Notes: generated by a model not told the origin, from the sequence alone. A stretch of DNA of 64,000 bases from Octopus bimaculoides (GCF_001194135.2 NC_068995.1:2887297-2951296); one strand, 5' to 3'. Shown: positions 23,683 through 59,384, numbered from the stretch's first letter. Numbers and translations: made by a program.

Positions 23683-23973
23683 ATGGAAATCATAAAGAGT
23701 TCGTTGGGAGCAGATATGATCGTTTACAGAGAGTATATTTATAGAAAAGATAAAGCCAACTTGAATACCATGTACTGGCGATGTGTTAAATCGAAATGTA
23801 AAGGGAGATTGGTGAGCATTCTGGATTATAAAGAAAAGGACGTGGAAGAAATTCAACTGAAGGTCAGGGGTCACCATTTTCATCCTCCTGATCCTTTGGA
23901 TGTGAAGGCAAGGAAAGCATTAATTGAAGCGAAGTCAATTTTGAACTGCAACGAACTACCTAGAAACAAAAAG
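23683..23973 (+). CDS. Variable exon F1: FLYWCH zinc finger (MULE-derived), 97 codons, ends in a phase-0 donor
   Basis: ATG 23683 gives MEIIKSSLGADMIVYREYIYRKDK...YWRCVKSKCKGRL...HHFH, matching the FLYWCH pattern (W-x-C..C..H-x-H). Donor AAG|GTAATC at 23973/23974; 291 nt = 97 codons. The ORF-track tail beyond this is AT-rich intron-like sequence. Confidence 0.85.
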
Positions 23974-26966: not shown

Positions 26967-27275
26967 ATGGAACGTGTTTTCAGTCAGCGAGGCAAAGAGA
27001 AGTTCTCACACAATGGCTATTTGTTTATATTTGATAAATTTAGTAGGACCGACACTGACTTAATGTTTTGGCGTTGTGAATTAATCGGCAGATGCAAAGC
27101 AAGAATTCACACAAAATTTGGCGATGTTGTGAAATTTATGAATACTCACACACATGATTGTTCACCAATAAGGGAAGTAGTAAAAATGGTCAGAAAATTG
27201 AAAAGCTGCTCTCGAAAGTCACTGGAAGGTCCAAATATAGTAATTGACGAAACATTGGGCAGTGTTTTCCGACCG
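26967..27275 (+). CDS. Variable exon F2: FLYWCH zinc finger (MULE-derived), 103 codons, ends in a phase-0 donor
   Basis: MERVFSQRGKEKFSHNGYLFIFDK...FWRCELIGRCKARIHT...HTH. Donor CCG|GTAAGC at 27275/27276; 309 nt. Confidence 0.88.
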
Positions 27276-30545: not shown

Positions 30546-31116
30546 AAATGTCTACATGTAATATTCCATATGGGTAAAATTTTGGACTATGATCGACTCC
30601 TTATAACCATTGTGCAATCTGACTATATATANNNNNNNNNNNNNNNNNNNNNNNNNNNNNNNNNNNNNNNNNNNNNNNNNNNNNNNNNNNNNNNNNNNNN
30701 NNNNNNNNNNNNNNNNNNNNNNNNNNNNNNNNNNNNNNNNNNNNNNNNNNNNNNNNNNNNNNNNNNNNNNNNNNNNTATATATAGGTTACTTGGAAAAGG
30801 ACGCGTGGCGTTCGGAGTACATAAAACAGGGGACAACTGATGAAGGGAATGTTCTTTATGCTGCATGTCTGTTTCTCTGTTTGTTTGTTGTTTTTGTTGT
30901 TTGAAAAAAAGTTCGTTTTCTATGCTTTTGTTTTTTATGTTCTCGTTTCTCATTCTGTCCACGTTTTTTTGATGTCCTGTACCCATATATGCATGTATGT
31001 ATACATATATATGTAGGTATGTACATATATGTATGTATATATTTATATATTATTTATATTATTATTATTATAATATACAGACGATACAAAGAAAACAAGG
31101 ATGTATCATGTGAATA

Positions 31117-31193: not shown

Positions 31194-32046
31194 TGTCACT
31201 GATTTTTCCCAGTCGCATTTTCCCAGCCAACATTTCCTAGTCACATTTTCGTAGCCGACATTTCTCGATAGCAGTTTTCTCCCAGCAAGACTACTTTAGA
31301 CAATATTTTCCGTTTTTATTTGCAATAATTCTATGAAAATTATAATTAACACAAGTAATCAGTAAGGAAGAAGATTACATGACGGAAAATGTTTTTATTT
31401 TGTTATGTTTAATTAAGGCTGTAAATAAATTATTTTAACTGTAAAAAGGTTATCAAACAGTTAACATTACAATTTCTCTTTATAAATACGTCATAAGATT
31501 TAAGATTAATAGCGATAAAAATTATCAAGTTATAAAGTTTGATTCATTTAGTATTTGCTTCCAGGAATATTCGAGAAATATTCGTTTGCTATAATTGAGT
31601 ATTAACAAATTTTATGCTGGAATATGGATAACAACGTTTCATACATCGCAAGTATCAGAGGCAAGGAAAAAGCTTGCAACAATGGCTATGTTTATGGGTT
31701 TGACAAGAAAAGCAAGAAAGACGACCAGCTCTTCTTTTACCTCTGCGAGAGACAAAGATACGAGCAATGTCCATCGAGAATCCATGTAAAACATGACACG
31801 GTGGTGAAACGCATGCATCAACATAACCATGCTCCAAATCGATCAAGGAAAAAAACCTTGAAAATAGCTTCTGAGATCAAAGATCATGCGGCCACTTCCG
31901 CGGAACCGTTCATAAATACCATCATAGCAGACAGGACAACTCATATACCAGCCTCTGTTGCAGCAGCAGTAATTATACCAAATGTAGGTACTCTGTTTAC
32001 TTTGCCTGTTCATTCACACAGATACAAAATACTATATATATGTAAA

Positions 32047-34173: not shown

Positions 34174-37100
34174 GTAAGCAAACAAATGTATAAGGTTAGG
34201 TTTTGTAGCTGTTTTTCTTTTTCACTCAGTTTACTTAGTAACCACCAGGCAGTAGGGCACCATCTCCTTGTCTTCACTTGTCATAATGTATGTATGTATG
34301 TATGGTACACTGTGTGTATGTATGGTATAGTATGTGTGTGTGTATATATGGTATAGTATGTATGTGTGTGCGTGCACACATGTATATATGTAAAATATAA
34401 CTGGTGTGTATATAATGAAGACACTAATTTACAACTATCACTCAATGTCAGGACATTCACACTGCATGGTACATTGGACAAATGACTTCTGTATCCATAT
34501 GAACTAATGGTTCTTAACCTGGATTGTAGTGTCCAGTTGTGGGCATTGTGGGATCACAAGATGGTGGCAAATGCCTAATGGGAACTGGATGTTTAGACAA
34601 ATTGTGAATGTTCTCAGAAACAAAATATTTAAACTCAGTGGAATCCTTTTATTTTAAATATATTAAAAAAATAAAACAAAAGTCTGTCAGGATTAGAATG
34701 TAAGTTGGACATTGTGTTATCAGTGAGTAGATACTTGACTGATGATGTGGCAAGGTGTGTAATATCACTGCCATTAGTCCTCACTTCAGTAATTTCTATA
34801 AATAAATTCAACATGGTGCCACTTGTCCTTGCAAATATCGAAAAAGAGGCTCCTGTTTGATGGTTTAATGAAACCTCTAAGTGCAAAATTAGCTACTGTT
34901 AGGTTAAAAAAAAAGAATTCACAAAATATGGCGAGGGTGATATTCATGAAAATGCCATTTGTTGAAAGGAGGTGATGAGGTACAGGAAAGAACGACTGGG
35001 AAAAGTATGATAGGCTTAAAATGATATCGAATATCCTTTTAGAAATGATTATTTTCTGAAAAACTGGTGGAAGTCTGTAGAGTGACTGAACAATTGTGTC
35101 CACTGATTAAATAAAACAATGGAGAGGTGGCAGTGCCGTTTTCAGGCATGGGAACATGGAACAGTTGCTTGGAGGCCACACCACTATAGGCACCCAGTTC
35201 TGATCTGTGTACGACAGTGGTTCTCAGCCATTTTTTGCCCATAGATCTCTTTGATTCCAATTTTACTCTACAAGATCCAAATAAACATTTGTTGTTTAAA
35301 ACAGTCCCATTATATTTTCATAATTAAATATCATTTGGAATTGTATGCAAAAAATTAAAATATTTTGTATATTGTAGAAGTAAAACCAGTTTATTGCACA
35401 TGAATTTTAACAGCAAAATCTTATGTACACCCCCAAAAAGGGCCATGTGGACAGCGTATATTGTATGCTGTCAATAAGTAAATAGTATGGGGCCTATAAT
35501 CCTAGTAAGACTGCTCTGGGTGGTGTTGAAATATAAACGATTATTTCCACCTTCCGGCTGAATGTGTCTCTCCGTAGTTATGTCCCTTTATTTTCTTGCC
35601 AACTTCGATATTCGCAGTAAAAAAAAATCAATAATACGAGATACCACCGAGGATATTATTTATTGTCTATAGCTTTTAGCACTAGGATAGCTTCAATTTA
35701 CAGTAATGAGTAATGTTATAAATGGAATCACACATAATTTGATCGACGACTAATTATAGCAATTCTTGCATATATGCAAATGTCGTTCGGTGAGGATGCA
35801 GTTTTCAGTTTTAGAAACCAATTTATCACCGATCTTTCACTTTGGGGCTCATAAGGGCTGGTTTCCTGGTGTCATTGGTGTATAGGTTCCCCATCTGAAC
35901 AGGACGCTGCTCTGTTGCAGGTGAGCTGCTAAATGCTGGAGGAAAGAGTGAGAGAAAGTTGTGGCAAAAGAGTCAGCAGAGGTTCACCATTACCTTCTGT
36001 CAGAGCCACATGGAACTTAAGGTGTTTTGCTCATAAACATACACATCGCCCGGTCTGAGATTTGAACCCATGATCCCTTGACTGCGAGTCCGCTTCTCTA
36101 ACCACTAGGCCATGTGCCTCCACTAGTTATATATGTAATGACTTCAAATTTTGGCACAAAGCCAGCAAGTTTGGAGAGGGGATAAGTCGATTACATCGAC
36201 CTCAGTATGCAACTGGTACTTATTTTATCAAACCTCAAAAGAATTAAAGGCAAAGTCAACCTCGGCAGAATTAGAACTCAAAATGTGAAGACGGACAAAA
36301 TGCTACCAAGCATTTTACTTGGCATTCTAATGATTCTTTTCTACTCTAGGCACAAGGCCCGAAATTTTCGAGGGAGCCCTAAACACTTAAAAGGGTGGCC
36401 TCATGTATATGAAATTCAAACTATAAAAACCATAAGATAAATTATTAAACACATTGATTAAATTTATTAGGCGAATATTAACAATATTCAGTCGCATTAA
36501 GTATGGTTACTCACATACATTATAAAGTACACGTAATTACATAACAGCACTGACGTACGAACACGCACGCACGCTTAATGCACGTTGTTTTTCAACTTCA
36601 TTCATCTTTTAAATGATTAATATTGAAATTAAAACAAAGATATTTTAATCCGAAGAAACTTCGTTGGGTTCTGTGAATGAATATCTCTGCTGAAATATCG
36701 AACACATTGGGACAAGAAACAACTTCACGAAATATATAAACATTTGAAAGTTTATAATAACTTCGACATACCCTCGTAAAAGAGTTTGATTTCCCCATAG
36801 CTTCCAGAAAAATGGATATTTGTAATGAAATTTTCTACAAATTCCTTCTAGATAATGTGGATTAAGATTATGTCGGAATTTAACGCAAAAAACAATTGAG
36901 GGCGCGCACACATCAGTACTGACAAACACCACCTACCTTAAAATGAAACTTGAAATTTTGAAAAAAATTATGTGATTTGTTTCTGTGTAATGTGTGCGCG
37001 CTCAGTATTATATTTTTTTTTACATTAAATTCCAATATAATCGTAATCTATACGACCAGAAAGTTACTTGTACAAAATTTCATTAAAAAATATGAAATTT

Positions 37101-37843
37101 TCTGAAAGTTATGAGGCAAAAAAGCCAGGGCGGCACAGTTGTGTTGGTATGCTGTAAATCGTTCGGTCAGCTACGTTTGTGAAAGTCCTTCTGTCGTCGT
37201 TCGCGATCCCTTCATTGACATGCTCGCTTTACTCCAAGTCGGTCTCCTAGTTTATAAGTTCTGTATTTAAATTTATATGGACGTGATTGAGAAATCCTCC
37301 TGAGATACAACAAAATGTATTTCAACGCACGGATCTTGCAAAACCAAATACAAAAACCTAAATATTTGAAAAATAAGGAAAAATAAAATAAAAATATGAC
37401 CTGATGGTTACGTGTGAAAATCTGGTAGGAATCGAAACCTTTACGTCGAGTACTTGCTTTTTTGGTATGTATTGTATTTTATAAGCTTACTACACTCACA
37501 ATAGAATATCGTCTTGGATAGAGAGACAAATGCAGAGATACGAGAGGAGGTATGTTGGTTCTTAAAACGATCGTTTGACAGTGACTTTACAATGACAGAG
37601 TGTAGCTGTCATTTTTACTGACTGATCGATTTGCCTTGTCACACAGCAGCCAGTCACAAATACACGTAATTAAGTTCACAGCCTTCCTCGTTTACAGCTA
37701 CAATATGTCATGACGATTTGCTGTCATCTCATTCGTTCATTGATTAAATTTTTAATAATAAACAACCTTTGTTTTCCCTTCTTTTGCCAACCAATTTACT
37801 TTGTAATCATTTGACACATGTGCGTCATTACGCGAGCTGTTAC

Positions 37844-37868
37844 TCACGTGATTCGGCTCCTCCAATCA
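37844..37868 (+). promoter_or_regulatory. E-box (TCACGTGA) plus CCAAT box about 50-70 bp upstream of the Y1 ATG
   Basis: TCACGTGA at 37844-37851 and CCAATCA at 37862-37868 in unique, CpG-richer sequence. Confidence 0.45.
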
Positions 37869-37915
37869 GATGCAGGAGTTTGATATACGACAGTTTCTCG
37901 GAAATTTTGGTGATC

Positions 37916-39130
37916 ATGTCGGATGTAGCTGACTCAAAGCCATTATCGTCTTCACTCACGCAATCCTTTATGAATGACTTCAACGCTGATATTGTTAGCG
38001 GAACCAAAAGCGATAAAAATGTTCTGTTAGTTGCAGATGACCCTCCTCCTGCAATGAATTCTATAAACTTCATAAACCTAGACGAATGTAGCCAGCTGGC
38101 AGGTTCGAGGAACACTAAACGGGTCACCGCCAGTTCTGTTAAATTGTTTCGAGCCTTTTTAAAGGAGACCAATAATGGAAGGACTGATTTTGAAAATTTT
38201 GATGAAGAACTCCTTATCAGTCATTTGATAACTTTTTTTAAGCGGGTAAGAAAGCCAGATGGTGATCTGTATACGAAGAATGGTTTGCTGTCGATTCGTT
38301 TCGGACTAAGAAGGCGCTTGTTAGACTTACGTAAAGTCGATATTACTAAGCACCCTCGCCTTAATTCAGTTTTTACTGCTCAGATCAATAAATTGAAACG
38401 AGAAGGAAAAGGAGATATAAACCATTATCCTCCCATTAGTCAGGATGACATGTTCAAAATTTATAGTTCAGGGATTTTGTCACCCGACACGCCAAAAGGG
38501 TTGTTAAGGAAGATTTTCTTTGAGACTGAAATGTTTTTTTGTCGACGAAGTAGAGAAAACCTAAGGGATTTGAAAGGAAGTCACTTTAAAATTGAAACCG
38601 ACGATCAGGGCAAAATATATTTGACCACAGATTTTGATCCATCGTTTGGTGGTGGACCAATCAAACGGATTTATGAAACTGGCACAGACATATGTCCAGT
38701 GAAAGCCTTTCGGAAGTTTTTGCTGAAACGTCATTCTGGCTGTGAGGCGTTATTTCAACGTCCCGTGGATATAATTCCGTTTTCTGAACAGGATCCTTGG
38801 TTTTATTGTTCAGCTCTCGGCCTCAATAAACTCGCCAACATGATGAGAGAAATTTCTTCAGAAGCGTGCCTATCCAAGATATATACAAATCATTCCATAA
38901 GAGCTACCTCAAAATCGGTCTTTGATCTCGTCTGGAACGGACTCTTCTCGCAGAACTCACCGAATACAATAGCACCTGCCTCTAGTGATGTCAGCAATAT
39001 TAGTGACATAACTTCTGTTTCAATGGAGAAGCCAAAGCAACGATCATCATCATCTCAAGGAAATGAAACTGATATCGATTTGAAATCGAACTTAGACATA
39101 CAAGAAATTGAAAGGAAACACGTCCCTGTG
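37916..39130 (+). CDS. Variable exon Y1: Crypton-type tyrosine recombinase / DUF3504-like domain, 405 codons, ends in a phase-0 donor
   Basis: Uninterrupted ORF with Crypton-like motifs RKPDGDLY...IRFGLRR, FFCRRSRENLRDL, CPVKAFRKFL, LGLNKLANMMREIS and YTNHSIRATS. ATG 37916; donor GTG|GTGAGT at 39130/39131; 1215 nt. Confidence 0.88.
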
Positions 39131-40413
39131 GTGAGTTCTTCATTAATACTCATCTTTATAAAACAGACCTCCATCTCTACTTCTTCACCTGTTGGACCTT
39201 ATTTCTCTTCCACTGTCCTCCAGTCTTTTATGACTCTTGCTCGTCGTAAATTAAGTGATGTCACAAATTTAGTCGGGAGCTGCTTAACTGACATTGATAG
39301 ACCGATAACAAAAGCAGTCTTAAGACAGAGTCACTCAGATATAACTGGGTGTGACTTAAAGGAGATTAAGCTACTATTTCTAGCAGATTGAGCGACCACT
39401 ACACTCTTTGACTCGAGTATAGTGATGTATAGAGTGATGCGAAGTTGCGGCTATTATGCCTTTCCGTAATCCTTACTACAAACAATAACTATAACATGTA
39501 ATGTGCCCACACTCTGGCGTATACCAGCCAATGTTTCATTTGAGTAAGGTGAAGGGTTCCATATATGTTGCCGTTGTTTAGCCCAAGGTCAACTTCACTG
39601 AGGCAACCTGTAATCAGCGTCTTTCCGACTGTGACAATCTCGTCTTTTTACTTAAAACGAAATTCAGCCAGTGTATCGAGGGTAAACCCTACCATCTTAA
39701 GGGAGGGGGGAGGATCTATTTGTTTTCTTTAAAACAGTGAGGATATAATCTGAAGATGAGTTGACTATTATTTCTAGCAGGTCGAGTGTCTACGTAGAGG
39801 GTCGACCTGCAAGAAATTGGGTGTTTAGTGGTATAAAAAAAGTGTGGGTTGTATTGTGATAGGAGGGTGGGCGATATCGGTGTGCGAAGGCCCTATTTAT
39901 TGTTGTTGGGAGGAGTGGTGGTGTTCAGCTCCGCCAAGTCAACCCTGATCGAGCAGACTTTTTACCAAAGGCATTTCAAACGTGACCATCCCGTCTTTCT
40001 TAAATACAGGCAACCGAAGACGTCATCTAACGGAGCCAGTTTAAAGATGAAGGCGTGATTTGAGGGAGATTTAGTTGCTATTTCTAGCAGATCTAGCTAC
40101 AACGAATAGATGTCCTTTGGACCGAGTGTAGGGATGTATAGGAAAGAGGTATTACCTACACAAGTGTGCTCCCCACCGACTTTGTTTCCTCTTAACTTCC
40201 AGAAAAATGGATGTTGTTTAATGAAATTTTCTACAAATATGTTTCAGATGGTATAGTTTTTGATTCCATCGGAATTTGTTGTTAAAAAAGTTTTTCCGAT
40301 GGTAGGGAGATGAGTTTCGGAAAATACACAAGAGTTGGCTCTGTTTTCTCATAACTTTACGAAAAATGGATATTTTTTAATGAAATTTTCAATAAATGCT
40401 TTCCAGATGGTAT

Positions 40414-41056
40414 NNNNNNNNNNNNNNNNNNNNNNNNNNNNNNNNNNNNNNNNNNNNNNNNNNNNNNNNNNNNNNNNNNNNNNNNNNNNNNNNNNNNNNN
40501 NNNNNNNNNNNNNNNNNNNNNNNNNNNNNNNNNNNNNNNNNNNNNNNNNNNNNNNNNNNNNNNNNNNNNNNNNNNNNNNNNNNNNNNNNNNNNNNNNNNN
40601 NNNNNNNNNNNNNNNNNNNNNNNNNNNNNNNNNNNNNNNNNNNNNNNNNNNNNNNNNNNNNNNNNNNNNNNNNNNNNNNNNNNNNNNNNNNNNNNNNNNN
40701 NNNNNNNNNNNNNNNNNNNNNNNNNNNNNNNNNNNNNNNNNNNNNNNNNNNNNNNNNNNNNNNNNNNNNNNNNNNNNNNNNNNNNNNNNNNNNNNNNNNN
40801 NNNNNNNNNNNNNNNNNNNNNNNNNNNNNNNNNNNNNNNNNNNNNNNNNNNNNNNNNNNNNNNNNNNNNNNNNNNNNNNNNNNNNNNNNNNNNNNNNNNN
40901 NNNNNNNNNNNNNNNNNNNNNNNNNNNNNNNNNNNNNNNNNNNNNNNNNNNNNNNNNNNNNNNNNNNNNNNNNNNNNNNNNNNNNNNNNNNNNNNNNNNN
41001 NNNNNNNNNNNNNNNNNNNNNNNNNNNNNNNNNNNNNNNNNNNNNNNNNNNNNNNN
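40414..41056. other. Assembly gap (other gaps: 14291-14416, 30632-30776, 32751-32760)
   Basis: Runs of N. Confidence 1.
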
Positions 41057-41124
41057 CCCCCCCCCCCAAGTTACGAGAAAGTAAACAAACATACGTGCGC
41101 GCACATAGACGCACACACGTAGTA

Positions 41125-41275
41125 AATACAACGGGCTTCTTTCAGTTTCCGTCTACCAAATGTACTCACAAGGCTTTGGTCGGTTCGTGGCTATAGTAGA
41201 AGACACGAGCCCAAGATGCCACGCAGTGGGACTAAACGTGGAACCATGTGGTTGGGAAGCAAACTTCTTTCCACA
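41125..41275 (-). mobile_element. tRNA-derived SINE family B (representative copy). Similar copies: about 20537-20625+, 20690-20835-, 22430-22520-, 42433-42590-, 62756-62870-
   Basis: Head GGCTGTGTGGTAAGAAGTTTGCTTCCCAACCACATGGTT..GGTTCAGTCCCACTG with pol III A/B-box-like motifs; no cloverleaf or CCA. Confidence 0.8.
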
Positions 41276-42249
41276 CTTCTTACTATAGCAGACCAGAGCC
41301 TTGGCGCGCGTGAATTGTTTTTTGTTATCTTTATTCCAACAATGGAGTTATGTATTTTTCTTAGAAACCAAATCCTTCCTCGGAGGAACAATTTAAATAA
41401 TCTAAAACAGAAGGGAACAGGCAAATGCAATACTTTATTTCAGGGTTATCTCCCCTGCTCCACTTTATCAGAATTAATCACAACACTAACGATTTTTTTC
41501 TCCTCATTACAAATGTAATTTTTTAAATGAATATATTAACGATTCTTGGCTCACTACATTATCTATGTTAACACCCACTTTACTGTTTGTTTTTCATACA
41601 AAAGGGAGACCCTGAGTACTTCTCCCCCTCTTCCCTTTCTCTCTCTTTCAGCCTTATTCGTTGTTTATAAAGAAAAGAATAGTCTTACCATGTCTAGAAA
41701 TTGCGTGTTACAGCAATATAGTGGTGGTGGTGGTGGTGGTGGTGGGGTACACACCACACTGCTGTGAATACAGAAGTGGTTGCTGTGTGTGTGTGTGTGT
41801 TTACTGGTTCTACCTAGACTCTCTAGTGTGAGTATCTAAGATCCACCCTCCCTCCAACATATACTCTAATACTCTGCATGACTCAACATGACCAGCTGAC
41901 AATAGGTGAAACCTAAGATCTTGATGTGATGTCCTACTTACCACACACAGTGTGTGTATGAGAGAGAGATAGAGGGACTGTATACATCTTTACTCTAAGC
42001 ATGTGTATCGTATAACTTTTGAAGAAAGAAAACACTGTGTGTGTGTATCTGTGCACCCCCCCCCCACCACACACACATAAGCACAAGCAGACACACAAAC
42101 ACACATATCATATATCTTTGGTAGATCTTAACAGACAGTTCATCACTAGTTTTCCAGATGCTGTATTCCAATAATAATATCACCCGATATATTTATTTAT
42201 CAATAAATATCATTATAGATATTATTTTAATATATATTGATAAAATAAG

Positions 42250-42408
42250 GTAGCGAGCTGGCAGAAACGTTAGCAGGCCGGGTGAAATGCTTAGCGGTAT
42301 GCCATCTGTCTTTGCCTTCTGAGTTCAAATTCTGCCGAGGTTGACTTTTCCTTTCATCCTTTCTGGGTTGATAAATTAAGTACCAGTTGCGTACTGGGTC
42401 GATCTAAT
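42250..42408 (+). mobile_element. SINE family A (representative copy). Similar copies: about 3240-3460+, 17590-17755-, 21860-22068+, 27345-27530-, 36140-36370-, 43245-43410-, 49640-49850+, 52250-52430+, 52450-52660+, 60330-60460-
   Basis: Recurrent GAGCTGGCAGAA..TTAGC...GTTCTGAGTTCAAATT..GCCGAGGTCGACTTT..GGTCGATAAA.TAAGTACCAG consensus. Confidence 0.85.
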
Positions 42409-45400
42409 TTGTTACCCACAAACACACATATACACAGCAAGCTTCTTTCAGTTTCTGTCTACCAGATCCACTCACAAGGCTTTGGTCAGCCCTGGGGCTG
42501 TAGTAGAAGTCATTTGCCCAAGGTGCTGTGCAGTGGGACTGAACCCAAGACCACATGTTTGGGAAGCAAGCTTCTTCACCACACAGCAATACCTGTGCCT
42601 GAACTAACTGATCAACTGCATGAGAGATGACTGTGTCCAACTTTGCAGAATGGTAGTTCAAATATGCCAGTGGCGTATTTGGAAAACAAGCCATTTACTG
42701 TGTTTTGTCATGGAGAAAATTTCTCGCTGCTTAGCGCTTCCACCCCACAATATTAGGTTCTGTTACAAGGGCCTGGACGTCCACAGTCTTTATGCTCCCC
42801 AAACGACGGAACTTCTATTGGTTGCTCGACATGCTAGAAATAACAGCCACTACTCCCTCATCATGCCCCGTCATCTTAAAAATATAATGTAGTCCTAGAT
42901 ACACTACGCCTGCCAGAAAGAAAATGAAAAGGAAAAAGCGAGAGAGTCGTGACTAGAACGCCTTTGGTCATTGATCTGTTCGATCAGAACTGACCAGGAG
43001 CCAAACGGCAGCATGGCCCTCGTTTTGGCTTCAGTAGTCTCATTGTGTTGGTCATTTCGTTGGAGAAAACGGGAGAAAAGATAACGTTCTTGACCGTCTG
43101 CGCGGCTGTCCCCGCCATTCCTGGTGTGAACCTAAAGCTTTTCATGACTTATCTCAGAGATTCCTTTAGGAAAGGCACCAACACCTATAACTCCTACTAA
43201 AAACATCGCCTTAGAAGATGACAGTAATAATAATCCTTTCTACTGTAGGCACAAGGCCTGAAATTTTAAGGGCGAGGGGCTAGTCGATTATATCGATCCT
43301 AGTACTTAACTGGTACCTGTTTTATCGACCGTGAAAGAATAAAAGGCAAAGTCGACCTCAGTGGAGATTGAACTCAGAATGTAAAGCATTTCGCCCAGCG
43401 TGTTAACGATTCCACCAGATCGCCGCCTTAGAAGATGACATCAATTATGATCACAGCAGTAATATGTAAATGAAAGTCTAACCTCTGTTCCGAGTTCAAA
43501 TCCTGCTGAAGTCGACTCTTATCCTTCCGGGACAGGTGGTGGTTTAGCAGAAACATTGTTTCGACTCCTTGCGTTCTGAGTTCAAATCCCACCCTCATAC
43601 TATTTGGGTGGTCACCTTAACCTGTTACCTCGTTTAATAGCAGAGCCTACTTTTCATACCAAGCATTCGAGTCAGGCTTCGGCGTTTAACCCTTTCACTG
43701 CACAATTAAATTTCTTGGTCCTTCCCGTTATGGTGTTATCTACCCCCAAAATAGAATTGCTGGGTACAGTTTTCATATCCTTCGCTTTAAGTATTTGATT
43801 CGTGCTCTGTAAAGAAATATTTAATGAAATATGTGGAAAAAGAAAAAAAAGAAAATTTAAAAAATTGTCTTTAGTAAAAATGAGGATTTCTCTGCTCCTT
43901 GCAGCATAAGGAAAGGAGCTTTTAGAAAGCTTTTGGGTTAAAACCGTTTTCCGCATTTACCGGTAATAACATTTTGAGCGGAATATTTCTGCTTTCCACA
44001 TTCAAAGGGTTAAAGATACTTTCTTCCTATTTTGCTACCAGTTTCAGAGACCCTGTAAAATGTCAACGGCAACTTGCCTTTTCCTCTTGACTAAAAGATG
44101 AAAAAACAAACAAACAAAACCCCCAATGGTTCACAGAATTTAATTTTGTCCCTGTCCGTCTCGAGTTAAAATCCTGGCCGTCGATAACCCCTTCTTTTCT
44201 CGGTGTCCGGGTGAGTTGATGAAACCGACTATACGCCGCCTCTCATCATATTCTCGGTTCTGTACCAGTGGGAGAAACCAATGTATTGACTGGTACCAGA
44301 ATATGAAATGGATAAAGTTGCCAGGGAGTCAAACCAGCGACACAGTTTCGAACTCCGACTGGAATAGTTTCTCTTCAGTTAGTCCCTTACTTAACTCGTT
44401 GGAAGAGCCATGAACATCACAACACCCTCTTTATCATTTCGTATAGTAGTAACACAACATTGGTTTCTTTTTTTTTTTCTTTCTATTCTTTGTTTGTTTG
44501 ATGAATTGAATTCGGTCTTGCCAGGATTCGAACTCGAATCTGGGAGAGACTAAGTTATTGTAATGAGTTTTAGTCCAACGCTCTGATGTCACAACTGCCT
44601 CAGCTTGCTTCTATTTATATTAGAAATTGTTAGCATTATTTGATTGTTTTATTAACACCGCCTCCATCCACCACCACCACCGTCATTATTATCATTACCA
44701 TCCCCACCACCGTCACAACCATCATCAACACCACCATTGTTGTTATTATTATTATTATTACTACCACTGTTAGTATTTTTATTACCACCACCACAACCAC
44801 CGCCATCATCACCATCATCATCATCACCATTAACAAGTCGACAGTCTATAACAACAAATATGGCAGCTGGTATTGAAGGTTTTGTTGTTCTGTTTTGCTT
44901 TGTGTGTGTTTTTCTTTTATTTTCCTTCATCTGAAAGGAATTCTGATGCTATCATATTTGACTAATATAGTCAGTCTGGTAACATTGTTATTTTGCTAAC
45001 AATGTGAGGTTTTTCGCCTTGATTTTGTTGTTGCTGTTGTTAACAACACCACCGCCACCACCACCGTAACTACTACTATTACCACCACCACGTAGTAATA
45101 GTAGTTGTGGTGGTAGTAGTAATAGTGGCAGAGCATTGTAACTTTTAATTGTTCTCTAACAAAGCACTTGGTATTCCCCCTCCTCTCCGTGAAACTGCAC
45201 CCAAATGTTATGGTGTATATATATATTATATAATATATTGTATAATATAATATATGTATTATGTATCTCTCAGTTAAATATATCTCTGGGTAGCACGCAA
45301 TATGTGTATGAATCCAGTTGTTGGTTTTTCTTCCTCCCCCCCCCCCCCAAGTTCAATTTAAATGTTGTTTCGATGTTAGAGTTGGAAGAAATAAAAAGTC

Positions 45401-45984
45401 AGGAATGAGTAGGGGGGAAGGGTGAGGTGGAAAAGCTTTTGGTTTAGTAGAAAGAATAAGAATAATAAAAGAGAGAGGGCGAAGCAATAAAGCTAGAAAG
45501 AGTTGTGTGTGAAGTAGGTTTGCTGTTGGTAGTTAGGCAGCTGCTGTCTGCTTGCTTGTTCTACTTTCCTCTCGAAACCAACCTACCACCATCAGCAGCC
45601 TGCTGTTTGTTGTTGTTTACAGTTAAACTGCTTGTCGATATAACAACCCTGTTGTTAGGCTTACTCAGAGAGGGGCGGCAGTCAGTTGTTGGTGGCTAGC
45701 TACACTCAGTACACATCGATTTACTGCAGTCTGACCTAAATCGACCATCACACAGAACGGTAAACAACGCACCACAAGCTCGAGAACATTCGCTGAACGC
45801 AGTTTAATACACATGTACTCAAGTTGTGATTTGGTTAGAATATCTCAGCGCCCAGCTTTTCTTCTACTGCTCATATAAAACCAAGTGATATTGTGTCTAA
45901 TGTCTCATGTCTGCTGTTATTTGAACAGTTTTTCTGATAGTCGTGGTTTAGCAGTTTTTTTTTTCACTTCTCTCCTCTGCACAG

Positions 45985-46051
45985 ACTCGTGTAACAATTT
46001 TCATTTGATATATTAAAACCAGTCGAAAGTTTTTGATGTCGAATCTCTCAG
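45985..46051 (+). other. Candidate non-coding 5'UTR exon upstream of Y2
   Basis: Strong acceptor tttttcacttctctcctctgcacag| and donor CAG|GTAAAT; 67 nt. Confidence 0.45.
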
Positions 46052-46195
46052 GTAAATTTTACTTCACAACTTGACACAACAAGCTAAGTTTATTACTGTA
46101 TTAATCGGATTAAACAATTTTTTCTGGTTGGCAACGTGGCTGACGCACAACTGGAAAGAAGCTTTGTATAGAGAGTCTGTGTTGTGACATCCAAA

Positions 46196-47362
46196 ATGGC
46201 CGACCCTCCGTTCGTTGGAGACCTCAACACATCTGCTGTAGACGGTGGTTTGTACCTCACAACAGCGTTGAACAACGAAGAATTTGAAGGTTTATTAACG
46301 AAAGACTCCAAGTCCAGTCAACAGGCTGAGAAATACGCGGTGTTGAAATTCCGTCACTATCTGACCAAGCGAGGTGAACCATTGTCTTTGGAAAATTTGT
46401 CCTACCATGTGACCAGTGGTGACATGCCTGCCAAGGAGCGACTTCTTACCTACCTGACCACCTTCTTTAACGATCTCAGACGGACTGACGGCAGTAAATA
46501 TAAATTCAATGCCCTTAGAAGTATTCGTTACGCCTTAAATCGCTTTACTTTGAAGTTTGGAGTTGATTTTCTCAACGATGCTTATTTGAAAAAACCATTA
46601 AATGATGCATGGGTGGCGTTAGGCGAATGCCTGAAGCTGGAAGGGAAAGCTGATGTCCAGCATCACGATATTTTATCGTTGGAAGAAGTTAAGAAAGCAT
46701 ATGCCTGGTGTAATCAAAATCTTTCTGATCCTGATCGACTCCAAAAGAGAGTTTTTATGGATATTTACCTCTACTTTGGACGTCAGTGCCGACAGAATTT
46801 ACCACACCTGACCAAAGATAATTTCGGCATGGACGTCGATGCTAACAACCAGCGTTATGTTTACTTTATCGATAAAGCCGGCGACACAACCCGTAAAAGT
46901 AACACCCAGCTAGTGATGAAAGAACGTGTAGGATTTGTTAATTGTCCCGTAAAGATGTTCCTAAAATATGTTTCCAAATTAGACCCACATTATCCGCGAT
47001 TCTTCTGTCATCAAAAGCTAAATGTTGACCCGCCCTATCACACAGTTTGGTATACAAAACAGCCGATGGGTGAGAAGAGAATGGCCGAGTTTATGAAATC
47101 CATTTCGAACGACGCCGGTTTGTCTAAAGTTTACACAAACCATTGTTTGCGTTCCACACTGCTGTATCTAATGGAAGAAGGTGGGTTGGATGCTAAGGAT
47201 GTCAGTCGAATAACCTGTAGTCAAGCACCTCACGAAGGATCCATACCCGAGGTCCCTTCACCAGCACAACGTCCCTTACAAACACCACATGTCGCCACTA
47301 CAAACACGTGGTCCTCACATTCTGGCACTTCACTTCACTCTCGGAATAAAAAATCATCTCAG
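46196..47362 (+). CDS. Variable exon Y2: Crypton-type tyrosine recombinase / DUF3504-like domain, 389 codons, ends in a phase-0 donor
   Basis: Motifs RRTDGSKYKFNALRSIRYALNR, YFGRQCRQNL, CPVKMFLKYVSKL, WYTKQPMGEKRMAEFMKSIS and YTNHCLRST. Start context CCAAAATGGCCG; donor CAG|GTAAGT at 47362/47363; 1167 nt. Confidence 0.88.
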
Positions 47363-47749
47363 GTAAGTTATATACTACTCACATTCACCTTCGTCCTCGT
47401 TAAACCACCCACCACGAACTTCTCTCTCTCTCTCTCTCTGTACCCAGCAGCCTCAATAACAGTATATATCCACCCCTATTTATATCCTCATTTTGTAAAT
47501 AAAGGAAGGTAACTCTAACATTAATCTGAGAAGTTGAACAAATTCTGGTAAATTCTTTCCACCCTTTCGAAGTCCTTGAGGTACCCTGATGTGTCTATTA
47601 TAGTTGTTGCTTGGTTCCAGGTTAGCTTTATTCCTAAAGGGATTCCAACCATAACCATCTCGTCTTTTTTTGTGTGACGGTAAATGTGATCTGAAGGAAA
47701 TTTGGCTGCTATTTCTAGCAGGTCGTGCGACTCCGTCGATTTGTCTATT

Positions 47750-48030
47750 GTGGCTATCTTGGTCTAGCTGCTATGGTACCCTGACGTATCTGATACTACC
47801 CTAATGCGTTATTCTGTGATAACCTAATGTATCTATGGAACCATAATACCTGTCTTACCCTGATGCATCTGCTCTGGTACCCTAAAATTTCTTGGGATAC
47901 CATCACTGTGACATCTCGATGCACTTGCTGTGGTACTCCGCTTGTATATACCATGATACCCAAATGTGTCTGATGGTACTCGGATGTACTAACTATGGTA
48001 CCCCGATCTATTTACTATAATACTCTGATG
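47750..48030. repeat. Degenerate tandem repeat with a TGGTACCC(T)GATG-like core
   Basis: Repeated tggtacc/atacc...gatg motifs. Confidence 0.6.
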
Positions 48031-48933: not shown

Positions 48934-51900
48934 GTATGTACAAGAAAATAAATAAATAATAATAATAATAATTAAGTAGATGTGCAGTTTCTGGCATTTA
49001 TCAACCCCCAGGGGTCGATATTGACCACCATAGAGACCCCTGGCCTATAGTAAAAAGTAATTTTTGTTTTCTTTTTGAAAAGGCGATGATCTGGCGGTTA
49101 CCATGCCAAACAATATGCTTAACAGCATTTCTTCCAGCTTTTACTTTCTGAATTCAAATTGCTGCCGAGGTTGACTTATGATAAAATAAGTACCAGTTGA
49201 ACACTTAGGGGGTCAGTGTAATTGAATTAGCTCCCTCCCCTAAGATTTCAGGCTATGTGCTTATAATAGGAAGGATTATTATTTTCGTTGTTTGGGCAAA
49301 ACGTTAGAATGTCTGACAAAATGCCTTGCAATGTTTGTTCTGGTTTAGTACATTGTGAGTTCAAATGCCACTGAGGTCAACTTTGTTTTTTATCTTTTCG
49401 GGGTCAAAAAATATACACCCCAGTCAAATACTGGGATTGCTATGGTTGACTGTCTCCCATCACCATCAATTTCTGACTTTGTGCCCATGTAATTTTTATT
49501 GTTACTTATTTTTACATCTTCATATATTTTTTAAAACACACACACACACACACTTTGATCGAAAGCCTTGTCTGTCCTTGCAACCCGTCTCAGTAATGTC
49601 CCTCATTAGTTACCCTTGTGGCAAATAAAGAATCTTATTATTGGTGAGCTGGCAGAATCATTAGCACGTTAGGCAAAATGCTTAGTGGCATTTCATTCAT
49701 CCTTATGTTCCGAGTTCAAATTCTGCCGAGGTCGACATTGCTTTTCATCCTTTTGAGGTCGATAAAATATGTACCAGTTGAAAACTAGGGGTTGATGCAA
49801 TCCATTTACCCGCTCCACCGAAATTGCTGGCCTTGTGCCAGAATTTGAGGCCATTATTGTTATTGTTGTCGACTTTGTCCTTTCAGAGTTGATAAATTGA
49901 GTACCAGGTAATTGACTATCCCCCCTCCCCCAAATTTCAGGTCTTGTGCCTATAGTAGAAAGTCTTATTATTATTATTATTGGTTTTTCATTCTCTTGGG
50001 GTTGCTGAAGTAAGTACCAGTTAAATACTGGGGCTGGTGTAATTGACTAGCCATCTGCTTTCAAAATTTCAAGCCTTGTGTCAGTAGAAAAGGATTATTA
50101 TTGTTATTGGCAGAGAGTTATTAGAACGTTGGAAAAAAAAAAGCTTTGATGCGATTAGATTTTTGTGAGTTCAAATTCCTCAGGGTTCTATAAAATAAAG
50201 TATCAATCAAGCACTGGAGCCAATGGTATTGATTAACCCTTCTCTCTTCAGAAGTACTGGCCTTCTGTTTCTGCTCAGATCAAAACCATTTTTTTTTTTC
50301 TGCAATAGTTTTATCGCAGATCCAATAACACCACCAGTTACTTCATCTCCATGTACCTGGGGTATGACAAAACATATTATCTTTTGGGAGGGAAGCGAAC
50401 CCATGTTTGTGTCTTAAGTCAATTTTATTTTGTTGTCTCTGGTGTTATTTTAAGATTTCGTGTTTTACTTGTGCAGGTGTGTGTTGTGAGATGTTTTATG
50501 CCAAAAAAGCCCCTTTGAATTCAATTTTACTCTGCTGGGCCTCCATAGCAGTTCAATGTATATATCATCATCATCATCATCAAACGTCTGTTTTCCCTGC
50601 TGGCATGGGTTGAAATGTTTTATGTATTGTAGAAATATAAGCAATTTATTGGAGATACATTTTAACAAAATCTTATATGGACCCCGATTGAGAAGCACTG
50701 GGTTTGAATATGTGTTTGTGTTGGAATGTTCTGTGGTGTTTCTGTTGCCTTTTGAGTTGTGTTCTAATGTTGTTGTCTGTGTGTTGTGTTATATAATGAG
50801 TGTAGATTATGTACAATGTCAGTTGTGCTATTTGGTTTCATGTTGATTGGGTAGAGCAGCGGGGGTCAGCAAAATGATCAATATTGTCCCCTGGGGAGGT
50901 CTCTGTGGCTATCCAAAGGCTCAATAAACACTGGAAACAACTTTTAGCATTAAGGGCACTGACTCATTTAGTAAACAAAATCTGCAAGAATGCAGTAATT
51001 TGTGTCTAAAACTTAGTCATTTCCAATCAAATATCAACATAATTACTAATATTTGCCAAACATAGTTTTACATTAAATATTCTGATCACATCAATATAAA
51101 ATCACGGAATTTTCATTGTTCTTTATCAATTTTGTGCAATATTTTCATTAAATTTCTTTTGGATGTACCTTATTAAAAAGTGGTAATGATTCTAAAGTAT
51201 GAAAAATTATTGTTTTGTTTTTTGTTTTTTTAAAATCAAGATGTGTTTTTATCATCTTGTGCTTATTTCAGTCATTAGACTGTGGCCATGCTGGAGTACC
51301 GCCTTGAAAAGCTTTTAGTCGTATGAATTAACCCCAGCACTTATTTTTTAAAGTCTGGTACTTGTTTAATCGTTTGCCAGAAATTTACTTGTTGAAGGTT
51401 GATAAATTAGCAACAATTCCATCAACGGAGTTGATGCTGTATGAAAATTGTTGAGCCATGGCATTGAGTGTTATGTTATGGAATTTGCTGTAATTCCACC
51501 CACTTCTTGGAAGTTTTATGGAAATATCATTGCAGCCTCCTTAGTTAATTGGTACTTTTTATGTAATCAACTCTGAAACCCAGAAAGAACGAAAGATTCA
51601 AGTTGATATCAGTAGGATTTGAACTCTAAACATTAAAGGCTGTAACTAAATAATGTTTCCAATTTAGGTGCAAAGCCAGTAATTTTTGAGGGGAGGGGTA
51701 AGTCAACGTCATCTGACTGGTACTTGGTACTTTATTTTAGTGACTTCCCCATCCATCCCAAAGCCGGAAGGGTGACAAAAAAAACGTCAAAGTCAACCTG
51801 AACGGTATTTGAACTCAGAACGTAAAGAGCTGTAACTAAATAGCACAAAGCATTTCATCTGATGCTTTACTGATTCTACTACTCCACCGTTGCCTGGTGT

Positions 51901-54900
51901 CAAGTTGTCATTGTGAGGAGAAAGAGAGAGGGTCTATGCTGTGGATTGTGTTTTATTATAGGGTGGGATTTGTGTAGAATATGGGTTATGCGAGTTATAG
52001 ATGATGATGATGATGATGGTGGTGGTTGAGAGACATGTTAGAGTATTGGGTGTTGCTTATGTAAGAATCCGTGTTGTATTATTCCAGTTGGGTGGTGATT
52101 GGGTAGACTTTGTGCTGTGTGTTGTATTATTGGGTGGTGCTTCTGTAGATTATGTGTTATGTGACTGGTATCATGGTGGAGTGGTGGGTGGGAACTGTGT
52201 AGGGTATGTGCTGTTGAACCATGATGATTGGTATGATTGGTGGTGAGCTGGAAGAATTGTTAGCAGGCCGGGCGAAATGCTTAGCTGTATTTTGTCTGTC
52301 TTCACATTCTGAGTTCAAATGCCGCCAGGATTGACTCCTTTTGAGGTCGATGAAATAAGTACCAGTTATGCACTGGAGTTGATGTAATCGATGATCCTCC
52401 TCCCCTAAATTTCAGGTCTTGTTTCTATAGTAGGAATGATTTTTATTTTAATGATTGGCAGAATCGTTAGCATGCCAGGTGAAATGCTTAGCGGTATTTC
52501 ACCTGTGGCTACATTCTGAGTTCAAATTCCGCTGAGGTCAACTTTACCTTTCATCCTTTCGGGGGTCGATAAATTAAGTACCAGTTAAACACTAGGGTCA
52601 ATGTAATCAACTAGCCCCTTTCCCCTCAAAATTTTCAAGGCCTTGTACTTAGAGTAGAAATAATTATTATGATTTAATAAAGTGGTAAGCTTGCAGAATC
52701 GTTTTATATATATATGTGTGTGTGCTGGTGTCATGTAAAAAGCACCTAGTACACTCCGTAAAGTAATTGGCTGTAAGAGGGGCATCCAGCCATAGGAACC
52801 ATGCCAAAGCAAACAATTGGAGCCTAGTGCAGCCCTCCAGCCATGCCAGCTCCTGTCAAACTGTCCAATCCATGCCAGCATGGAAAACGGACATTAAATG
52901 ATGATAATGTGTGTCTCCTTGTTTTGACATCATGTGATGGTTGTAAACGGGCATCTCTGTTCTGCAAGTGGTGACCTTTGTTTCCAGTCCAAAGTGAAAA
53001 CCTATCTGACCATGGAGGAAATATTACCTTGCTTGGAAACAGTTGAGGGCTCCAAAACAGAAAGTTTGCCTCAAGCAGCAATTCTATTCAGCCATGTAAG
53101 CATGGAACAGTAATCGTTAAAACAATTCTGATGAGGATGATAATGGTAACTTTTCAAGTTCAAACCCAACTTTACTTTTTTTCTCATGGAAGTCGATAGA
53201 TTTGTCTAACCAGTGGTATACTGGAGTGGGTCAGTTCTGTTAATTTTTTTTTTATCCAACTCCACTGTGGTATTGTGTCTCAATTAAACACCATGACTGT
53301 TGTTGTTGTTGTTGTTGTTAGTATAGCGATGGTGGTGGAACTCTGCTGTGTGTGAAAACTATTGAACCAGTTTGCTTTCAGATAACAATAAATAATAATA
53401 ATAGAGCAACATATTCCAATTGTCACTGCACACCCCAGAAGCTATTTATAGGTCAATGAACTGAGATATTTGTTGTTAGTTGTCAAGAGGGTGGACTGGT
53501 CTTCTTCATATGTTTTCATACATTCAGTCTTGTCTGTTTTCTGTCAAGTAAACTCAGCAAACAACAGCCACCAGTGATAGCTTTAGAAGGACTTGTAAAG
53601 AGGTGGAGGGGTGGTTGGGAAGAAGTAAGACTTGTGAGGGTGGTAGTTGGAGGTAGAGCTGTGAGGTAGTAGAGCACCACACTCCATGCTTTTACATGGT
53701 TTGTTTGAGCTTTCTACATTTGCCTCAGTTGATTTAACCTTAAAATACCATAACTTAATTGTTGTTCAGTCCCAGGTCATTCCTGATGGAGCAGACTTGT
53801 GATCGAAGGCATGTGACCATCCCTGTCTTTTCTTGTGTACAGGAAAGCCAGAACCACATTATCCAATGTATATTCTTTCTTAAGATGGCAAGGTGTGATT
53901 TGATGGACTTTGGCTGCTATTTCTAGCAGATTGAACAACTCCCCCAAATGGTTGGAATAAGTACCAGTAATATATCATGGCCATTGACTAACTAAACCAA
54001 CAATGATTTCAAATATTGGTACAATGCCAGGAATTTATAGAGGTGACCAAAAGTCTTTGAGAGAAATTTTGCAAGATGGAATGAAGTTCCTTTTGGGTCC
54101 CACCTTGTCAGAAAGTTTTTCTTGGGTCTCTGGCCCCACCCTCAGTCCTATGTAACAACTGGACCTCTCTTCTCATAGACCTTGCAGAAAGCATATGAGT
54201 TTCTTGAATTGATACTTACGTTCTTGACCCCAAGAGGGGATGAAAAGCAAAGCTGTCCTAGAATTGAACTAAGAATACTTACCCTTCAGCATTTAAAGTG
54301 GCCACATCCGGCCCAGGTATTCTATGTATTTTATGATCTGGCTTTTCACACATACCCTTCCATGTCGTCCCCAAAATAAACAATGACATCATTGAAATCT
54401 CAAAACAAGATAATGCACAATTAATTCAAAACAATGGGAATAGACAAGCATTATATTTGACCGAATAATTTGAATGCTGTCAACCCTTTAGCATTTAAAC
54501 CAGCTACAGCAGGTTGAAATATTCTACCTGATTAAATGTTTATACCAACTAGATCTGACCTCTCAGACCTACCCTACAGTGTCATTGTAAAAATAAACAA
54601 TCACATTATCAAAAGCTTAAATCTACAAAATAATACATGATTAATTGAAGAAAATGTGGATAGATAAGCATTACGTTTAAGAGAATAATCAGTATACAAA
54701 AGGGTTAAAGGTTGATTATCAGTTCTTTTATCATTTTCATCATTCCACCATCCCAAGAAAAGGATTTAAGGCTTAGACTTAAGTCTGTTACAAACTCCAG
54801 GACTCATAAGGCTGGAGCTTGACCCTGTTTCCATTGCAGTAGAGATTACAACACAACAGCACCCCCACCCTACAAGATAGGATGCCAGTTCCTCACAAGG

Positions 54901-56828: not shown

Positions 56829-57130
56829 GAGGAGAACAACTGTGAACTGTACCCCAGTGTTAACAATGTAGGTAATACATACTCACTAAACTCGTTCAAT
56901 GGTAACGTTCAGGTAGAGAAACAAGCAGCAGAGAAAGACATTGTGGAAACAGCGGCAGTGAACCCTATGGAGTTCAAGCTGAGGCAGTCGGAATTTATGG
57001 AAGCTCAGAAGCAACAGGCTGAATTCATAGAAGCCCAGAAGCAACAGGCTGAGTTTATGGAAGCTCAAAAGCAACAGGCTGAATTTATGGAAGCCCAGAA
57101 GCAACAGGCTGAGAAATTAGCCGAGGAAAG
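56829..57130 (+). CDS. Constant exon C1: phase-0 acceptor, coiled-coil-like (EFMEAQKQQA)x4, phase-2 donor
   Basis: Acceptor tttaattttccag|GAG GAG; donor AAG|GTTGGT at 57130/57131; 302 nt. The phase matches the acceptor of C2. Repeat variants are mostly synonymous. Confidence 0.8.
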
Positions 57131-59242: not shown

Positions 59243-59384
59243 GCAACAAAGACAGAACGAAAGCAAAGTATATAAATATATGGTTTTGAATCACGAGAAG
59301 AAAATTCTGGAAACTCTTCGAACGCTTTGGAAAGGAAACCAGTTCTGTGATGCGATGTTGCAAAATGAATGTGTGTCTATTCCA
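59243..59384 (+). CDS. Constant exon C2: N-terminal part of a BTB/POZ domain (not in the ORF track)
   Basis: Acceptor ttttttttgtag|G (phase 2), then QQRQNESKVYKYMVLNHEKKILETLRTLWKGNQFCDAMLQNECVSIP, then donor CCA|GTAAGT (phase 0). L..L...FCD..L......P is the classic start of a BTB fold. The rest of the domain was not found in the window. Confidence 0.8.

Follow-up and report, generated by a model that had tools for sequence, protein, structure and literature searches.

The 64,000-nucleotide stretch of Octopus bimaculoides DNA analyzed here (NC_068995.1:2887297-2951296; hereafter the window) contains two long open reading frames (ORFs) on its + strand, Y1 and Y2, which according to our analysis are the two alternative first coding exons of a single BTB/POZ gene, LOC106879774. 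We consider it highly probable that both are old, selectively maintained remnants of Crypton recombinases which lack the catalytic tyrosine and now head one octopus BTB gene. The conceptual 910-amino-acid (aa) protein obtained by joining Y1 to the common exons is identical to XP_014784956.1 (LOC106879774 isoform X1), and the first 537 aa of XP_014784958.1 are the exact translation of Y2 joined to the common exons C and D of the window; the last exon of the gene lies outside it. XP_014784958.1 is the O. bimaculoides member in the sequence cluster of XP_029646297.1 (O. sinensis LOC115220336 isoform X2), a protein which was recovered by an exhaustive profile search and in which a BTB domain (PF00651) is located C-terminal to the DUF3504 part. 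Orthologous isoforms of the Y1 type are annotated in O. sinensis and O. vulgaris, and three Octopus annotations carry the same exon joins. The annotated octopus isoforms were recovered by exhaustive profile search only and were not returned by a word-indexed protein search with Y2, while a word-indexed protein search with exons C and D gave no match. In the literature library searched, we found no paper naming the gene or its protein identifiers, or linking Cryptons with octopus. The locus was compared with its ungapped O. sinensis orthologue (L011) and with a set of distant loci, namely, L001 and L004, which are one 237-kb ENA contig, L003, L005, and L002, which holds Y1 only. The positions of all features are collected in the table.

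Features of LOC106879774 and of the surrounding locus (positions in the window unless a locus is named; a slash within a splice site marks the exon-intron junction; omega is the ratio of nonsynonymous to synonymous substitution rates)
Feature	Position	Strand	Description
Y1	37916..39130	+	alternative first coding exon, 405 codons; conserved start ATG 37916 (MSDVADSK); phase-0 donor between 39130 and 39131; open frame 37769..39391, read-through stop 39391
Intron between Y1 and Y2	39131..46195	+	holds Y1 read-through tail (to 39391), repeats resembling short interspersed nuclear elements or miniature inverted-repeat transposable elements (SINE/MITE-like), gap 40414-41056
Y2	46196..47362	+	alternative first coding exon, 389 codons; conserved start ATG 46196 (MADPPF), earlier in-frame GTG at 46184; phase-0 donor between 47362 and 47363; open frame 46184..47512, read-through stop 47512
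Exon C	56829..57130	+	phase-0 acceptor TTTCCAG/GAG; coiled-coil-like; phase-2 donor AG/GTTGGT
Exon D	59243..59384	+	phase-2 acceptor TGTAG/G; BTB/POZ start; donor CCA/GTAAGT
O. sinensis Y1	L011 33240-34457		orthologous exon
O. sinensis Y2	L011 53405-54580		orthologous exon
O. sinensis exon C	L011 68256-68558		orthologous exon
O. sinensis exon D	L011 73044-73190		orthologous exon
O. sinensis last exon	L011 81340-82413		counterpart beyond the window in O. bimaculoides
Promoter-like block before Y1 ATG	37808..37892	+	conserved in window, L001, L002, and L003
22-nucleotide invariant CATTTGACACATGTGCGTCATT	37808-37829		part of Y1 upstream block
E-box TCACGTGA	37844-37851		part of Y1 upstream block
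CCAAT	37862-37866		part of Y1 upstream block
TATACGACA	37884-37892		part of Y1 upstream block
FLYWCH exon 1	23683-23973	+	own ATG, phase-0 donor; omega 0.71 versus O. sinensis
FLYWCH exon 2	26967-27275	+	own ATG, phase-0 donor; omega 0.54 versus O. sinensis
FLYWCH exon 3	31624-31983	+	own ATG, phase-0 donor; omega 0.37 versus O. sinensis
Helix-turn-helix (HTH) exon	L001 13167-13682; L003 3959-4471; L005 4428-4940		between Y1 and Y2

Y1 and Y2 are shown to be Cre-like tyrosine recombinase homologues of the Crypton (CryptonA/DUF3504) type, anciently captured. A previous inspection of this DNA from the sequence alone (the sequence-only reading) had described two open Crypton-type recombinase frames of about 1.2 kb each, strongly diverged from one another, and this description holds, since the two + strand frames share 30% identity across 244 aa (E=4e-28). 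Their DUF3504 homology is secure despite sub-threshold Pfam scores, being established by phmmer (E=4e-45 to DUF3504-annotated proteins) and by profile search. Protein search with Y1 returned two close relatives at 66-69% identity, plus relatives at 30-40% identity with a complete GH...Y end, and a profile made from Y1, Y2, and their homologues matched 19,153 cluster representatives, including 2,523 with E<=1e-30. Y2 has an additional weak Phage_integrase match in Pfam. Relatives in the family also pair DUF3504 with C2H2 fingers, THAP, or DDE_Tnp_4. Two long relatives, P0065 and P0124, combine ATF7IP_BD with a C-terminal DUF3504, in agreement with the bird ATF7IP/Crypton association of Kojima & Jurka.

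Structure prediction had been proposed in the sequence-only reading as a check, and AlphaFold models of Y1 and Y2 were built from the homologue alignment, with predicted local distance difference test (pLDDT) scores of the two models of 73 and 67.5. Both display a two-lobed fold, consisting of an N-terminal helical core-binding lobe and a catalytic lobe, whose core is confident, with disorder beginning at residue 341 in Y1 and at residue 343 in Y2. In Foldseek searches against the PDB, tyrosine recombinases were matched at probability 1.00 and E values as low as 1e-5, namely, Cre, XerH, XerA, and lambda Int. For the Y2 model, which matched Cre, Xer, and lambda Int, the top hit was QRICH1 in the Zincore complex (9hjt_H, SEPHS1:QRICH1:ZFP91:DNA; E=7.8e-7), a fold match at approximately 14% sequence identity. 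For the Y1 model, Cre, and not QRICH1, ranked first; template modeling scores (TM-scores) were modest, at 0.33-0.45.

We examined the catalytic residues in a motif alignment of 17 sequences including 12 more distant homologues reading ...SGH(R/K)xExS(I/L)xxY, for which the consensus is YTNHSIRAT..(I/L)..D..G......I....SGH(R/K).E.S(I/L)..Y. Arg-I is present as RRSRENL in Y1 and as GRQCRQNL in Y2. The alignment agrees with the sequence-only reading that both exons keep the H-x-x-R box (YTNHSIR in Y1, YTNHCLR in Y2), the H and R columns being invariant across the 17 sequences, and that neither has the GH...Y nucleophile segment which should follow. Y2 retains two helices after H-x-x-R and reads ITCSQAPHEGSIPEV at the site where SGHRSExSIRSY is expected, so that ITCS replaces (S/T)GH and the Tyr is absent. 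Y1 diverges from the family consensus about 15 residues past H-x-x-R into Ser-rich sequence; the whole segment following the H-x-x-R helix is lost, and the last ~65 codons form a Ser-rich disordered linker. His/Trp-III and the Tyr helix are gone from both exons. The GH...Y motif is found in 0/8 Y1/Y2 orthologues, versus 99/114 family relatives (87%).

A Tyr supplied by a downstream exon had been named beforehand as the observation that would speak against this loss. Six-frame translations were searched by tblastn with 14 C-terminal segments and with a hidden Markov model, and no GH..Y segment was detected in the O. sinensis locus (92 kb), in L001 and L004, or in the window, hence neither in the gene of two Octopus species nor in the distant loci. 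Every exon that follows in the two isoforms has been identified, and none encodes a catalytic Tyr. The best candidate for the Tyr segment, at 52928-52969 of the window ('HHVMVVNGH', E=0.3), was rejected since a stop codon precedes it and it is redundant with Y2's own segment. The absence of the nucleophile precludes the covalent 3'-phosphotyrosine intermediate, and with it the cutting and rejoining of DNA, so that Y1 and Y2 are predicted to be catalytically dead. A recombinase activity kept with the help of a Tyr from another protein in trans or from an undetected exon, as in Flp-like trans cleavage, would find a basis in the conservation of Arg-I and H-x-x-R, which exceeds what vertebrate DUF3504 genes keep. 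We deem it very improbable in view of the searches just described, of the complete account of the downstream exons, and of the further loss of His/Trp-III, with no clear beta-hairpin Lys to be made out.

The tandem order and orientation of Y1 and Y2 are kept in L001, L003, L005, and L011. The O. sinensis locus occupies the orthologous position and is collinear with the window at 85-92% nucleotide identity, while alignment of the window with L001 is restricted to the two coding regions, the flanks being unalignable. Between the window and the distant loci, the proportion of synonymous differences (pS) reaches 0.79-0.89, i.e., saturation, with a nonsynonymous divergence (dN) of 0.17-0.33, and binomial testing against the neutral expectation yielded p values of 1e-28 to 1e-57. 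In the comparison of L001 with L003, where synonymous divergence (dS) is about 0.45, omega amounts to 0.24 for Y1 up to H-x-x-R, 0.08 for the Y2 core, and 0.10 for the Y2 tail. In the comparison of the window with O. sinensis (dS 0.12-0.18), it amounts to 0.19 for Y1, 0.06 for Y2, and 0.045 for exon C. Such substitution ratios show purifying selection on every part except the Y1 linker.

Saturated synonymous sites, low omega, and a shared loss of the Tyr together argue for host sequences maintained over a long time and not for decaying elements. The sub-threshold Pfam scores, the low-complexity tails, and the repeat-rich surroundings could be taken to mean that Y1 and Y2 are Crypton fossils undergoing decay and that their frames have stayed open accidentally. 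This explanation, to which we attach practically no credence, is refuted by the selection and synteny results: the 1.2-kb frames are open in every species examined despite saturated synonymous sites, omega lies between 0.06 and 0.3, with p values as low as 1e-57, and starts, donors, and upstream motifs are conserved.

The domestication suggested in the sequence-only reading is supported by the orthologous position, the purifying selection, the shared Tyr loss, and the splicing to host exons. Its description of Y1 and Y2 as old and separately retained copies stands with regard to age and selected retention, but not with regard to separate genes, given that the two are alternative first exons of one gene. 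Multi-copy flanks and termini, which it had listed as contrary evidence, were not seen at the locus: the flanking repeats are SINE/MITE-like, and the copy number, one contig per genome on record, gives no sign of a multi-copy active family. The inverted repeats on either side of Y1, at 37015-37133 and 40171-40289, were considered as Crypton termini and rejected, as they belong to a dispersed family with extra copies nearby and do not occur in the distant loci. Many Tyr-bearing family members are at least as close to Y1 and Y2 as the two are to each other, and by distance the paralogue ranks 114th and 64th of 121, in a tree that is weak at 30% identity. A tandem duplication after domestication is unsupported, since the paralogue ranks so far down, though with the same weakness of the tree. 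The two exons not being mutual nearest relatives, the sequences are compatible with two separate captures, and likewise with a very old duplication.

In every Y1 and Y2 orthologue, the conserved coding sequence stops at a strong phase-0 donor, which reads GTG/GTGAGT in Octopus and GAG/GTAAGT in the distant loci for Y1, and CAG/GTAAGT in Octopus and CAG/GTAGGT in the distant loci for Y2. Past these donors, the read-through sequence, its length, and the position of its stop all vary among orthologues. When the clusters of L001 and L003 are compared, the conserved blocks are the exons and the few hundred bases before them and nothing else. Translated comparison of the window with L004 revealed two conserved exons 3' of Y2, namely, C and D. 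Exon C, characterized by EFMEAQKQQA repeats, has the same acceptor and donor phases in L004, is present in both annotated isoforms, and starts without an ATG of its own in either lineage. Exon D encodes ...KVYKYMVLNHEKKILETLRTLWKGNQFCDAMLQNECVSIP and is 78% identical to its L004 counterpart by tblastx. The junction between C and D is in phase 2 in both lineages, and the two exons are joined in-frame. On the strength of the conserved phase-0 donors and the phase-0 acceptor of exon C, Y1 and Y2 are predicted to serve a common body as its alternative first exons.

The repeat count of exon C (EFMEAQKQQA, 56950-57110) differs among entries from the same species (884 versus 894 aa and 900 versus 910 aa), for which alternative splicing, allelic variation, or a discrepancy between assemblies could account.

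Should the predicted gene models be wrong, Y1 and Y2 would instead be two separate genes of one exon each, or ORFs reading through to 39391 and 47512, that just happen to lie 5' of a BTB gene. In favor of this, the protein collection includes prokaryote-style ORF calls corresponding to the read-through forms (P0182, 491 aa; P0178, 403 aa), and Y1 has its own conserved promoter-like block. We nevertheless regard this explanation as improbable, since strong donors occur at the homologous codon in all orthologues with unconserved sequence behind them, the phase-0 acceptor of exon C is conserved with no ATG at its start in either lineage, conservation between L001 and L003 is limited to the exons and their upstream regions, and the same joins recur in three Octopus annotations.

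The body shared by the two isoforms carries a BTB domain which matches PF00651 with 43 bits in the full isoforms and whose nearest solved relatives are the BTBs of gigaxonin, KLHL3, KLHL26, KBTBD2, and BACH1. As far as these matches indicate, it is of the classical BTB/POZ type and not of the KCTD/T1 type. The BTB assignment comes from the full isoform, as exon D alone (47 aa) is not recognized as BTB by Pfam or by phmmer against the PDB. Pfam detected no BACK, Kelch, or zinc-finger domain after the BTB, where the body continues into a long low-complexity tail. Conceptual short BTB-only proteins have no counterpart in the protein collection.

Several observations weigh against an origin of Y1 and Y2 as Crypton remnants serving one host gene. 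In Pfam, Y1 reaches 23.3 bits and Y2 28.4 bits for DUF3504 (PF12012), both under the gathering score of 29.7. The omega of the Y1 tail between L001 and L003, about 0.6, is not different from neutral. The catalytic beta-hairpin Lys could not be confidently placed, the loop having low pLDDT: where homologues have (T/S)KNH, Y1 and its orthologues are without an alignable Lys, and Y2 reads TRKSN in Octopus and LRRGN in the distant orthologues. Moreover, the isoform models are NCBI predictions, and expression as part of a host protein is predicted from gene models and comparative splice sites. Finally, the Logan contigs bearing Y2 orthologues, which are collinear with the genome and end in homopolymer runs, are uninformative on splicing and were rejected as transcripts.

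With these points taken into account, we still favor maintained, Tyr-less recombinase remnants at the head of one BTB gene, and the following mode of action can be envisaged. The gene would make at least two proteins with a shared BTB body, differing solely in their dead-recombinase head. The heads may act as non-catalytic clamps which target nucleic acid or chromatin, either by binding DNA directly or, in the manner of QRICH1 in Zincore, by holding factors that are bound to DNA. The two heads might thereby give the common BTB body two different sets of targets, and the body itself might self-associate and/or recruit partners such as CUL3 or co-repressors. Targeting of DNA or chromatin by the Y1 and Y2 heads, which the sequence-only reading had already suggested, is a putative function, and the retention of Arg-I and of H-x-x-R, which contact phosphate, favors direct DNA contact.

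The heads could instead be mainly protein binding, gripping DNA-bound transcription factors or another partner and bringing the BTB body there. In line with this, QRICH1 in 9hjt_H is the best structural match of Y2 (E=7.8e-7), and a work cited in PMC13538652 characterizes QRICH1-SEPHS1 as a zinc-finger coregulator complex. However, Arg-I and H-x-x-R are kept here, unlike in vertebrate DUF3504 genes, which fits continued contact with DNA phosphates, the Y1 model has Cre and not QRICH1 at the top of its matches, and the TM-scores are modest (0.33-0.45). We therefore think a mainly protein-binding role unlikely, though it merits consideration.

The block upstream of the Y1 ATG is invariant in three distant loci whose remaining noncoding DNA is unalignable, and we propose that it may function as a separate promoter. 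The assembly gap (643 bases) starts 1.28 kb past the Y1 donor and precedes the ATG of Y2 by 5.1 kb, which places it in neither frame. Since it falls within the intron, continuity of the reading frame across it is not an issue. The 40409-41392 segment of the window corresponds to 5.2 kb in O. sinensis (L011 35761-40941) made of repeats and low-complexity ORFs with no meaningful ORF, and the true length of the gap is probably several kilobases instead of 643 bases. A dispersed-repeat copy ends right at the gap start.

The intron between Y1 and Y2 differs in length by ~12 kb between O. bimaculoides and O. sinensis. Window positions 42409-42656 correspond to L011 42032-50525, i.e., ~8.5 kb extra in O. 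sinensis, and this extra stretch includes a duplicated 125-aa repeat-derived ORF. Dispersed SINE/MITE-like repeats occur at 36100-37150, 39350-40413, 41100-43400, 47680-47750, and 49170-49290 of the window, exemplified by ...CTATTTCTAGCAGGTCG... and ...AAAGGCAAAGTCGACCTC...GAACTCAGAATGTAAAG, and none of them is found in the distant loci. Rfam and tRNA scans of the window were empty. Farther upstream, on the - strand, 9055-9606 holds a Cys-rich ORF of 183 aa (…TCTTCNIPCG…YRWYCSRCKNRKS…) without a Pfam match at E<=0.1, which we take to resemble the zinc-ribbon N-terminus of a transposase.

Further candidate heads were identified at the locus. Three exons encoding FLYWCH zinc fingers (38-50 bits in Pfam) precede Y1 on its strand, and the gene range on record for O. 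sinensis starts precisely at the ATG of FLYWCH exon 1; they are possibly further alternative first exons of LOC106879774. The conceptual proteins joining FLYWCH to the common exons have no entry in the protein collection. Between FLYWCH exons 2 and 3, the assembly has another gap, a run of N at ~30700-30850 seen as X in the ORF 30552..30986. In the distant loci, an HTH exon is found, which encodes a pogo/Tigger-type CENP-B_N plus HTH_Tnp_Tc5, with its own ATG, a conserved phase-0 donor, and an omega of 0.10-0.12. Neither the window nor the ungapped O. sinensis locus has this exon. Its location inside the gap (expected at 40580-41010) was rejected for Octopus on account of its absence from O. 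sinensis.

All six exons, namely, Y1, Y2, HTH, and the three FLYWCH exons, end in phase 0, matching the acceptor of exon C. They might represent a head-swapping array, in which one BTB body repeatedly trapped DNA-binding domains of unrelated families of transposons as separately promoted, interchangeable first exons. Its members would be two different Crypton recombinases in all lineages seen, up to three FLYWCH exons in Octopus, and an HTH exon in the distant lineage. The weak constraint on the FLYWCH exons, whose omega is 0.37-0.71, counts against such an array, and we put it forward tentatively, as an idea that falls somewhat short of being probable. In Drosophila, mod(mdg4) and lola combine one BTB body with alternative DNA-binding modules encoded by 3' exons, which are partly trans-spliced, and the alternative modules of mod(mdg4) are FLYWCH fingers. 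The octopus locus resembles mod(mdg4) in presenting a BTB body together with FLYWCH. Unlike in mod(mdg4) and lola, the variable modules of the octopus gene are N-terminal first exons, probably with alternative promoters. If true, the array would be the cephalopod counterpart of mod(mdg4)/lola with reversed polarity and a natural system where different dead transposase heads steer one effector to different targets.

Domesticated Cryptons have so far been described mainly in vertebrates (KCTD1, KIAA1958, ZMYM2-4, and QRICH1) and in WOC. The statement of the sequence-only reading that the vertebrate DUF3504 genes are Crypton derived and generally lack a full catalytic set agrees with the literature (PMC3212892); in these genes, the second Arg is lost and the His mostly so (PMC3212892). 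A 2026 paper on DUF3504-encoding CryptonA treats animal domestication for the ZMYM/QRICH1 group only (PMC13465315). The biochemical role of DUF3504 is just beginning to emerge via QRICH1/Zincore, QRICH1-SEPHS1 being presented as a zinc-finger coregulator in the reference given in PMC13538652.

Active animal CryptonA elements are of one protein family with Y1 and Y2 and share with them the N-terminal core-binding-like lobe and the catalytic lobe, but Y1 and Y2 are without the Tyr, single on record, syntenic, spliced to host exons, and under purifying selection. As in QRICH1, ZMYM2-4, and WOC, a Crypton-derived two-lobed fold without nucleophile is present, whereas the zf-FCS/MYM or Gln-rich context of those proteins is missing from the octopus gene. 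The closest parallels are found in two vertebrate genes. The single-exon DUF3504 of KCTD1 isoform b goes back to the insertion of a Crypton 5' of a BTB gene (Kojima & Jurka 2011, PMC3212892), and the octopus gene likewise has single-exon Crypton DUF3504 upstream of BTB exons, giving an N-terminal dead recombinase which has lost its Tyr and a C-terminal BTB. It differs from KCTD1 isoform b in that its BTB is the classical PF00651 type with no KCTD/T1 match, in that there are two alternative heads instead of one, and in that H-x-x-R is complete, its second Arg being lost from KCTD1. Two intron-less DUF3504 exons, 26% identical, serve as alternatives in KIAA1958 (PMC3212892), and the octopus gene similarly holds two diverged intron-less DUF3504 exons, 30% identical, in different isoforms; unlike in KIAA1958, which has no BTB, they are first coding exons with their own ATGs and join a BTB.

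Given the different BTB class and the mollusc host, the octopus capture is an event independent of the vertebrate ones, and the gene combines by convergence the design of KCTD1 isoform b (DUF3504 plus BTB) with that of KIAA1958 (two alternative exons). Independent arrival at a dead-recombinase head on a BTB body suggests that the combination is functionally favored. These findings provide a functional annotation for an 'uncharacterized protein' conserved in cephalopods, whose Y1 and Y2 frames should be annotated as alternative exons and not as transposon remnants. With Arg-I and H-x-x-R kept and the nucleophile side alone lost, the octopus domain is less degenerate and useful for asking what the pocket still binds, and the presence of two heads on one body is a natural design allowing direct comparison of what each head contributes.

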